Shown: positions 7,685-9,167, numbered from the stretch's first letter. The stretch is DNA of 64,000 bases from Diplonema japonicum (GCA_964019335.1 OZ025710.1:248001-312000); one strand, 5' to 3'. Notes: generated by a model not told the origin, from the sequence alone. A program made the numbers and translations.

Positions 7685-9167
7685 CTGTGTGACTTTTTTT
7701 TTTTTTTTTTTGGAGAAAAGCTTTTGTTTGTTGCAAAAGAGAAGAATCAGCAGATAGGGATGGCAAAAAAAAAAAATGTGTGCTTTTTTTATTTAAAAAA
7801 TTGATAATCAGGGATGGGAAGGGGTGGGGGTGGAAAAGCCAATATAAATATATATTTTTTTTTCTTCTTCTTTTTTTCCCCCTGTTCACCTCGAAAGGTT
7901 TTTTTTTATAGGGAGATGCGAAGGAACACAGTCGCTCGTGAGTTCAAGCGTTACACAAAAAAAATTAAGAGATTTTTTTTTCTGTTTTTTTTTTTTTCAT
8001 GATTTTCCGTTGTAATAATTGTCGGAAAAAAAAATAAAAAATATAATTATTCTACGGTCGCACACTCAAGCGAACTACCGAGAGGCTTCTGTAGCAAATA
8101 AGAAATAACAATAAAAAAATCAAAAAAATGGTATGGGATTAATGTGAATTAAAAAAAAATCTTTTTTTTAAATATTTACCAGCAAAGATGTGAAGAAGTA
8201 GCAATGGCAAAAAGCCGCACCGAAAGGGGGGAGCGGACTTTGCTTAAAAGCACAAGGAACATCTTTACCAGAGTTTGGTTTCTGCTTTTTTTCTTTTTTT
8301 TTTCCCCCTTAAATGTCGCCTTTCCCACCCCACCCCTTTCCGTCTCCTCTTAAATCAAAAAAAAAAGAGAAAAACAAACCATGGTGTGAAGCGTTAAAGG
8401 GGAAAAGATCAAGATTACCCTAAAAAGGGTATTTTTTTTTAATAAAGGTACGAGGAACACCTAGGAATTTGGTCTATTTTTTATTATTTTTTTTTCCAAA
8501 GAGGAGCGGTAAAAAAGAGGGGTGTATTCGGGAGGAGTGGGCAAAAGGGACGGTAGAAGAAAAAAAGAGAAAAAGCGGGAGGAAAAGAAAACAGAGTTTT
8601 TTTTTTTTTTTTTTTTTTTTTCTTCTTCCTTCTTCTCCTGCTCGAGTTGCATCTCTTATATATTGCTTATGTTAAAATAGGAGCAAAGATGTGGACTAAT
8701 CGATTGGGGGAAATGAAAAAAAAAATGAAAAAAAAGGAATAGGGCCAGCCAATTCCAGTTTTTTTCCCATTTTTTTTTTCCATTTGCACAAGTACGAGGA
8801 ACATCTTTACCAGCATTAAAAAAAAAAAAAGGAGAGGGTAAAAACAAATAAAAAAATTAAGAAAGCATAAAAAATAAGAGAATAAAACCGCAGGAGAAAG
8901 AATCGAAAAAAATGGAAGAAGAAGAATAATCAGATTTTTTTTTTTAAAAAAAAAGTTTTACCTGCCATAGAATGGTGAGACAAAACATAATATGTGAAGA
9001 GATTTGAAGAATAAAAGGGAGGGGAAAAAAAAAGAGAAACTTTCAGGGTAGGGGGGGCTCAGCCACCTAGAGGGGGGGAACTCACCACCCAGGGGCCTTC
9101 CTAGACCTGACAGACCTTCATTTTTTTTTCTTCCCCCCTGAAAGAGCTCGAGGAACACAGATGTTTT
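7685..9167 (-). promoter_or_regulatory. Array of five structured RNA motifs in the putative 3' UTR of the SPX-CCCH gene
   Basis: In mRNA sense: stem-UGU-UCCUYGWRC...YUYC-ACA-stem. Arm pairs are 9141-9167/8982-9000, 8792-8813/8681-8696, 8448-8465/8379-8392, 8250-8271/8179-8196 and 7919-7931/7685-7693. Stems differ in sequence but still pair. Confidence 0.6.

Follow-up and report, generated by a model that had tools for sequence, protein, structure and literature searches.

The cluster of five iron-responsive elements in the 3'UTR of the transferrin-receptor mRNA is composed of structured units that lie in tandem and in the same sense within one 3' region, that conserve their unpaired nucleotides while their helices vary, and that together form a multivalent protein platform for one mRNA. 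The array of five modules considered here, which lies between two genes of a 64-kb window (the whole stretch of 64,000 nt that was analysed) of the Diplonema japonicum genome (GCA_964019335.1 OZ025710.1:248001-312000), is likewise tandem, same-sense and structured and also combines conserved unpaired nucleotides with changing helices; the likeness at the level of a platform is proposed. The units themselves are distinct, in that an iron-responsive element is a hairpin of ~30 nt whose apical loop reads CAGUGN and whose stem contains a bulged C, whereas the modules have neither this loop nor this bulge (no CAGUG occurs in any of them on either strand) and carry conserved bases that flank the base of a 67-235-nt domain.

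Several systems nearer to the organism, or nearer in architecture, invite comparison as well. The snoRNA clusters of trypanosomatids and Euglena, which reside in pol II polycistrons, are similarly arranged in tandem on the sense strand with a terminal helix beside the boxes, whereas the modules have no C box and no 3' AGA/ACA tail box, and their cluster is not reiterated elsewhere. [quoted passage not shown] These repeats share with the array a gap beside a gene and a period of ~350-400 nt; the modules, by contrast, retain only two short boxes plus the arms and resemble neither flanking gene. The non-canonical introns of euglenids and hemistasiids are variable in sequence and pair at their two ends, close to which lies a conserved complementary triplet (PMC12501133, PMC12621601), CAG/CTG as against UGU/ACA in the modules, which also differ by their non-coding location and overall signature and by a likely host whose introns are nearly all GT-AG. 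Finally, integron attC sites and MITE-like foldback elements also form arrays of imperfect palindromes, which vary in length and combine a short conserved core with arms peculiar to each element, whereas the boxes of the modules lie inside the arms and are not mutually complementary, and neither a recombinase, nor a target-site duplication, nor a second locus accompanies them.

The locus and its host genome

The modules occupy the minus strand of a homopolymer-rich gap of 3.6 kb (7152-10777, GC 0.32-0.39), flanked on their 5' side by the gene for a protein with SPX and CCCH zinc-finger regions and on their 3' side by a gene of the Bles03 family (Table 1). In profile searches with the SPX-CCCH protein, zf-CCCH scored 24.6 bits, above the cut-off, and SPX 22.9 bits, below it. 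The stop codon of this gene lies 1.6 kb 5' of module A, such that the modules fall 1.6-3.1 kb past it, and the Bles03 ATG follows module E at a distance of 0.5 kb on its 3' side; just before this ATG stand a long pyrimidine tract and AG that are likely to constitute a spliced-leader acceptor. All neighbouring genes have the same sense as the modules: the minus strand carries every sizeable ORF from 1 to ~50 kb, and the orientation flips only near 50-54 kb. The strand-switch region (51500-54660) contains long local repeats, with 28-nt and 21-22-nt words ~2 kb apart and CCTATTCTATTATCCATTGTGCA in a tandem array at 54513-54650. Elsewhere in the window, gene blocks with equal ORF lengths are duplicated ~10 kb apart (16247-18191 vs 26333-28289; 18996-20135, 21085-22167 and 24993-26081).

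The 3' half of a spliced leader, CAGTTTCTGTACTTTATTG, is present in 232 copies in the 62.5-Mb genome compared with 0 for the reversed control, and three of these copies carry ACCAACGATTCTAAAGCTA in front, which yields a 37-nt spliced leader two bases off the "Euglenozoa 14" leader (PMC3795323). The leader and the gene order therefore indicate a euglenozoan with a leader of kinetoplastid/diplonemid type and a polycistron-like arrangement of its genes. Copies of the leader are dispersed, many of them close to contig ends; in the three copies that were read, three unrelated sequences follow the 37-nt leader (one of the three starts with GT), and at least some copies therefore resemble retro-copied trans-spliced mRNAs rather than SL RNA genes. 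A tandem rDNA array with a unit of 6,825 bp (SSU, 5.8S and LSU by Rfam) was located at 6500-13400 of contig C119, a 33-kb contig that holds at least four units.

In D. papillatum, genes are co-transcribed and 5'UTRs measure ~70 nt, whereas 3'UTRs have a median length of ~800 nt, extend up to several kb and have been proposed to act as platforms for RNA-binding proteins (PMC10161547). The spliced leader and a gene order like that of a polycistron make it probable that the modules are transcribed, and they plausibly belong to a long 3'UTR of the SPX-CCCH mRNA; since a leader acceptor would precede Bles03, the upstream mRNA could, by kinetoplastid logic, span all five of them.

Table 1. Features of the array and of its flanking genes, listed in the direction of the minus strand
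Feature	Position	Strand	Details
SPX + CCCH zinc-finger protein gene, 613 aa	10778-12619	-	ORF; gene 5' of modules
Module A	8982-9167	-	arms AAAACAU-C-UGUGU / ACAUA-UU-AUGUUUU; interior 159 nt
Module A 5' box UGUUCCUCGAGC	9157-9146	-	
Module A inner helix CUUUCAGGG/CCCUGAAAG	inside the 159-nt interior	-	
Module A 3' box CUUCACA	8999-8993	-	
Module B	8682-8811	-	arms GGUAAAGAUGU / ACAUCUUUGCU, 11 bp, 2 G-U; interior 108 nt
Module B 5' box UGUUCCUCGUAC	8803-8792	-	
Module B 3' box GUCCACA	8696-8690	-	
Module C	8379-8465	-	arms GGUGU / ACACC, 5 bp; interior 69 nt
Module C 5' box UGUUCCUCGUAC	8459-8448	-	
Module C 3' box CUUCACA	8391-8385	-	
Module D	8179-8271	-	arms CUGGUAAAGAUGU / ACAUCUUUGCUGG, 13 bp, 3 G-U; interior 67 nt
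Module D 5' box UGUUCCUUGUGC	8261-8250	-	
Module D 3' box CUUCACA	8195-8189	-	
GGUAAAUAUU	8171-8180	-	adjoins 3' arm of D; 10-nt repeat 8815/8184
Module E, weakest	7683-7933	-	arms CUGUGU / ACACAG, 6 bp; interior 235 nt
Module E 5' box UGUUCCUUCGCAUC	7928-7915	-	one inserted U
Module E 3' box GUCACA	7693-7688	-	
Bles03-family protein gene (PF08939), 227 aa	6468-7151	-	ORF; gene 3' of modules

Five modules with a constant junction

The initial annotation had described five sites with their boxes, arms and loop sizes, all of which were confirmed in place. The modules, 87-251 nt in size, share one plan, in which arms of 5-13 bp enclose two boxes, UGUUCCUYG(N)RC on the 5' side and YYC-ACA on the 3' side, separated by an interior of 67-235 nt. 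Each box is placed directly inside its arm, the 3' box reading CUUC-ACA in modules A, C and D, GUCC-ACA in B and AGUC-ACA in E. All five closing helices are retained in minimum free energy (MFE) folds, where every interior forms a hairpin of its own followed by a pyrimidine-rich single strand; these hairpins include a long one of A-run and U-run in module B (MFE fold z -4.0), UACCC-UUUUU-GGGUA in C (z -1.8) and GCAAAG-CCGC...GCGG-CUUUUUGC in D (z -3.0). The arms of module C are followed by CC/GG beyond a 2-nt mismatch, and module E (z -0.5) has another possible 3' partner, GCACACA, 147 nt downstream of its 5' box. Next to the 3' arm of D, UGCUGGUAAA within 8171-8180 equals the start of module B, and this segment probably represents a decayed remnant of the 5' arm of a neighbour copy that was lost, a trace of tandem duplication.

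How closely are the modules related outside the elements that define them? The sequence TGTTCCTYG has four occurrences within 905 nt of a single strand, when 1.9 would be expected in the whole 128-kb two-strand window, and the box of module E, UGUUCCUUCG, is a variant of it with a one-base insertion. Over 12 nt the 5' box is identical in B and C, from which A and D each deviate at two positions; pairwise identity thus amounts to 10-12/12 for the 5' box (A-D) and to 7-8/9 for the 3' box (A, C and D), whereas the interiors and the 40-nt flanks align at 20-50%, which equals the background for such composition. The boxes are therefore sharply bounded islands, and their occurrence amid otherwise unalignable sequence argues for constraint, in keeping with the selection that had been suggested for the element at the outset. 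Among the non-low-complexity exact repeats of at least 9 nt in the 3.6-kb gap, module boxes and arms make up 9 of 14, including the longest.

The gaps around the SPX-CCCH gene hold other repeated words. A second local repeat on the minus strand of the same gap, GUUCCA(A)GGGG..CAAUAAGG.UC.U.CCCC, is found at 10167-10130 and at 9752-9715, 415 nt apart; a 10-nt word, UCGUUCCAGG, is common to 9754 and 7383; and in the gap that borders the opposite end of the SPX-CCCH gene a palindromic word, GGAAACGTTTCC(GTTTCCGT), is arrayed within ~100 nt (13293-13400).

Pairing of the arms and the likely strand

The initial annotation spoke of five covarying stems, which overstates the case. When compared with random 12-nt flanks of the same gap joined to UGU/ACA, the arm helix energies gave P values of.06 for A,.007 for B,.036 for C,.003 for D and.06 for E. 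Modules B and D have the same stem and were therefore counted as one event, and the Fisher combination for A, B, C and E is about 5e-4; as a whole the arms pair better than random flanks at a combined P of about 1e-3, and in a comparison of 120 permutations the cognate combination of arms came 4th. Next to UGU/ACA, chance often produces stems of 5-6 bp, and the stems of modules C and E, with 5 bp and 6 bp, lie close to the chance level; moreover, the 5' arm of E finds better partners in the 3' arms of other modules than in its own. Formal analysis of the B, C, D alignment detected one compensatory pair, A-U to G-C, which was equalled by 167 of 500 shuffles and hence is not significant, and the addition of A and E by eye supplied a second covarying position (U-A vs G-C). 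Compensatory change is limited to these two base-pair positions, the outer parts of the arms being element-specific and not alignable. Because covariation is so limited, the helix is supported mainly by excess pairing and not by covariation in the classical sense.

With respect to strand, the earlier statement that G-U pairs exist only on the minus, mRNA-sense strand was borne out: the arms contain four independent G-U pairs on this strand (two common to B and D, one extra in D and one in A) and no mismatch of the A-C type. Fold z-scores for the minus vs the plus strand are -4.3 vs -3.4 in B and -5.1 vs -2.7 in D; they do not discriminate between strands in A, C and E, and overall both strands are about equal. 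Taken together, the G-U pairs, the folds of B and D and the orientation of the genes favour an RNA of the sense (minus) strand. What speaks against this strand is the junction, which on the plus strand reads GAAG/AGGA, with possible tandem G-A pairs, a well-known stable motif; on the minus strand it would be a loop of pyrimidine-pyrimidine mismatches that, to our knowledge, matches no known motif. A plus-strand k-turn or tandem G-A reading is nonetheless disfavoured: modules B, C and E do not conserve the GA, and the plus strand is antisense to the polycistron.

Distribution across the genome

Is the array one member of a dispersed family or regulon? A BLAST search with 7680-9170 against the 62.5-Mb genome returned homopolymer and low-complexity matches only. 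Genome-wide, TGTTCCTYGNRC is not enriched (257 matches vs 336 for the reversed control); one two-box pattern was found 28 times vs 11 in the control, with 7 of the 28 contributed by one coding repeat, and another 77 times vs 125. By eye, the flanks of the later pattern matches are GC-rich coding sequence. The box is not enriched in the genome and so is no regulon motif. Eight loci encode relatives of the CCCH region, and for none of them did the adjoining 5.8 kb on the 3' side contain a module; a search of metagenome contigs for SPX-CCCH revealed no relative.

A first covariance model, built from C and D, recovered its own training sequences only. A second one, built from B, C and D, scored these three at 72-97 bits, did not recover module E, and returned module A, which had not been part of the training, at exactly 8982-9167 as a weak match (14.9 bits, E 0.21). 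Against the genome, it produced two 25-bit low-complexity matches without the junction among the 150 of 43,708 first-look candidates that were scored. The module family is confined to the SPX-CCCH/Bles03 gap; it is not a dispersed transposon family, the BLAST, pattern and covariance-model searches (the last with the scope just given) having found no relatives, and neither is it a regulon motif. As a family of one locus, it is not cleanly separable from the effects of local events in the recent past, duplication and gene conversion among them.

Two look-alikes within the window deserve mention. A match at 20603 (-) was dismissed as a chance resemblance. At 43006-43064 (+) there is a 59-nt hairpin, CUCCCAU/AUGGGAG, with UAGGUGUUCCUU on its 5' side, 11 nt of which are identical to module C; it lies antisense to the gene array, and as a module it is probably a product of chance.

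Comparison with known RNA and DNA classes

No gathering-level Rfam match was obtained in the window, and a scan of 6500-11500 with E values up to 10 yielded homopolymer-driven matches only, far below threshold. As regards box C/D snoRNAs, no RUGAUGA or one-mismatch form is found beside any arm on the minus strand, and the D box CUGA never stands beside the closing helix: modules B, C and D lack it, and A and E have it at internal positions only. With a 2-nt gap, the sequence of the 5' box is close to the antisense of the sarcin-ricin loop, GUACGAGAGGAAC, and there is a second, equally good LSU site for it; the best duplex with the organism's own SSU/LSU rRNA (-15.3 kcal/mol) is equalled by 36% of shuffles and by 24% of matched 12-mers from the window, so that the complementarity is at chance level and the idea of a guide snoRNA was rejected. 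Euglenozoan single-hairpin H/ACA-like RNAs are ~65-75 nt long and possess a pseudouridylation pocket and an AGA/ACA that lies beyond the lower stem, 3 nt from the 3' end; in the modules, ACA is part of the closing helix, the size is 87-251 nt and the conserved bases are at the bottom of the loop rather than at its top. Internal T-runs of 4-12 nt in every module (minus strand) exclude pol III genes of the kind that form Y RNA and vault RNA clusters, and no tRNA gene was found in the 64-kb window.

At the DNA level, the module flanks contain no direct repeats that would betray the target-site duplication of a transposon or MITE. Insertion into a palindromic target was discarded as well, the empty site AAAGATGTACATCTTT being absent from the genome, as was an origin from the ends of the flanking genes after the manner of D. 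papillatum, for which only homopolymer-driven scores were obtained. The N3-CAG//CTG-N5 code of the Euglena-type nonconventional introns was not found; the triplets are UGU/ACA, their spacing is different and there are no exons. GGUAAAG at the starts of B and D resembles a canonical 5' splice site, a candidate that was rejected with no matching CAG and a species consensus of GTATG; D. japonicum introns are reported to be 98% GT-AG with a median of 41 nt.

Discussion

How might these features be reconciled? The boxes, the pairing, the strand bias and the single-locus distribution observed here would be most readily accommodated by an array of locus-restricted RNA modules of the sense strand that serves as a multivalent protein docking platform acting in cis, a reading that we favour tentatively while holding it short of probable. 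The array would then occupy an intercistronic stretch of a diplonemid polycistron, most likely in a long SPX-CCCH 3'UTR. In this reading, each module comprises a closing helix, in which UGU/ACA and the two covarying pairs are continued by pairs peculiar to the element, then a 5' junction strand (UCCUYG(N)RC) that is conserved and rich in pyrimidines, a hairpin domain that varies, and a likewise pyrimidine-rich 3' junction strand with its YYC end. The copies may have arisen by local duplication and since then have retained nothing but the two junction boxes and arms that can pair. By juxtaposing both boxes, the helix could create a composite docking site for one sequence- and structure-specific RNA-binding protein, and five such sites in a row could provide a multivalent platform that influences the stability, translation or processing of one transcript in cis. 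In short, we infer that the modules are transcribed into a mature mRNA, bound by a protein and endowed with some regulatory effect.

The features that point to constraint have to be set against what local duplication could produce on its own. An inverted-repeat unit may have been duplicated at a start spacing of ~350 nt and then have decayed, with boxes and arms as its best-preserved or gene-converted, unselected remnants. This possible, if rather unlikely, course of events is the main rival and is consistent with start-to-start distances of 352, 348, 193 and 335 nt, with the decayed extra 5' arm after D and the identical arms of B and D, with a second local repeat family in the same gap and the like in other intergenic gaps of the window, with the gene-adjacent repeats of D. 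papillatum and with the lack of significance in the formal covariation analysis. However, uniform decay should not spare islands of 12 nt and 7-9 nt at 80-100% identity with background around them; the similarity between B and D is bounded exactly by the arms and not by a 350-nt unit; the arms of A and C are unlike those of B and D and still paired; and, unlike in D. papillatum, the modules bear no similarity to the ends of the flanking genes. Could the units instead be a new class of small stable ncRNAs cut from a polycistronic precursor, whose helix and boxes act as signals for RNP assembly or end protection? Tandem, same-sense units of 87-251 nt with a terminal helix and adjoining boxes do recall C/D, Y and vault RNAs, and the modules, like the euglenozoan snoRNA clusters, sit within a pol II polycistron, but there is no C box, no D box beside the closing helix and no Rfam match, control 12-mers complement rRNA as well as the 5' box does in 24-36% of cases, T-runs of four to twelve in every unit exclude pol III, and the single locus and widely varying sizes also speak against such a class, which we thus regard as unlikely.

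Two further readings leave the platform aside or assign it to the neighbouring gene. Elements that operate as DNA (folded DNA, recombination sites or miniature mobile elements), or else unconventional structured introns of the euglenozoan type, would explain why the units are discrete and bounded by inverted repeats; the tandem G-A pairs that the plus-strand junction could place beside the helix and, for introns, the pairing of ends around a short complementary triplet in euglenids and hemistasiids point in the same direction. Nevertheless, both appear improbable: no other copy was detected in 62.5 Mb by BLAST, pattern or covariance-model search (150 of 43,708 candidates scored in the last), neither an empty palindromic target site nor a target-site duplication exists, no recombinase gene lies nearby, the arms differ between copies, and the G-U/G-T pairs favour the strand opposite to that of the G-A reading, while an intron would have no coding frame to restore here and would depart both from the Euglena code and from the short GT-AG introns of D. 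japonicum. Kinetoplastid genes for RNA-binding proteins are commonly autoregulated through their own long 3'UTRs, and the position of the modules, downstream of the SPX-CCCH gene and on the same strand, is what suggests that they might be autoregulatory sites through which phosphate/inositol-pyrophosphate status feeds back on the mRNA of this gene. CCCH fingers, however, usually bind short single-stranded A/U-rich RNA, quite unlike helix junctions, no module lies downstream of the eight paralogues sharing the CCCH region and the box is not enriched elsewhere in the genome, all of which renders such autoregulation very doubtful. The full scheme, in which the SPX-CCCH protein would read phosphate/inositol-pyrophosphate status through multivalent, structure-dependent modules and tune the stability or translation of its own mRNA, is to be expected least of all; if true, it would represent a self-contained circuit of nutrient sensor and RNA target in a diplonemid, together with a previously undescribed RNA junction motif. 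For the ligand-responsive element that the initial annotation had offered as another option, there is no support at all.

What would the array, read as a protein docking platform, mean for diplonemids? Like kinetoplastids, they appear to regulate their genes mostly post-transcriptionally, their 3'UTRs are unusually long, and we found no defined cis-element described for them. Should the modules turn out to be debris of neutral duplication, they would show that the local repeats of homopolymer-rich gaps can mimic covarying RNA motifs. As it stands, the array of five modules, with its fixed junction and changing arms, offers a concrete candidate for such a cis-element beside a gene that possibly encodes an RNA regulator.
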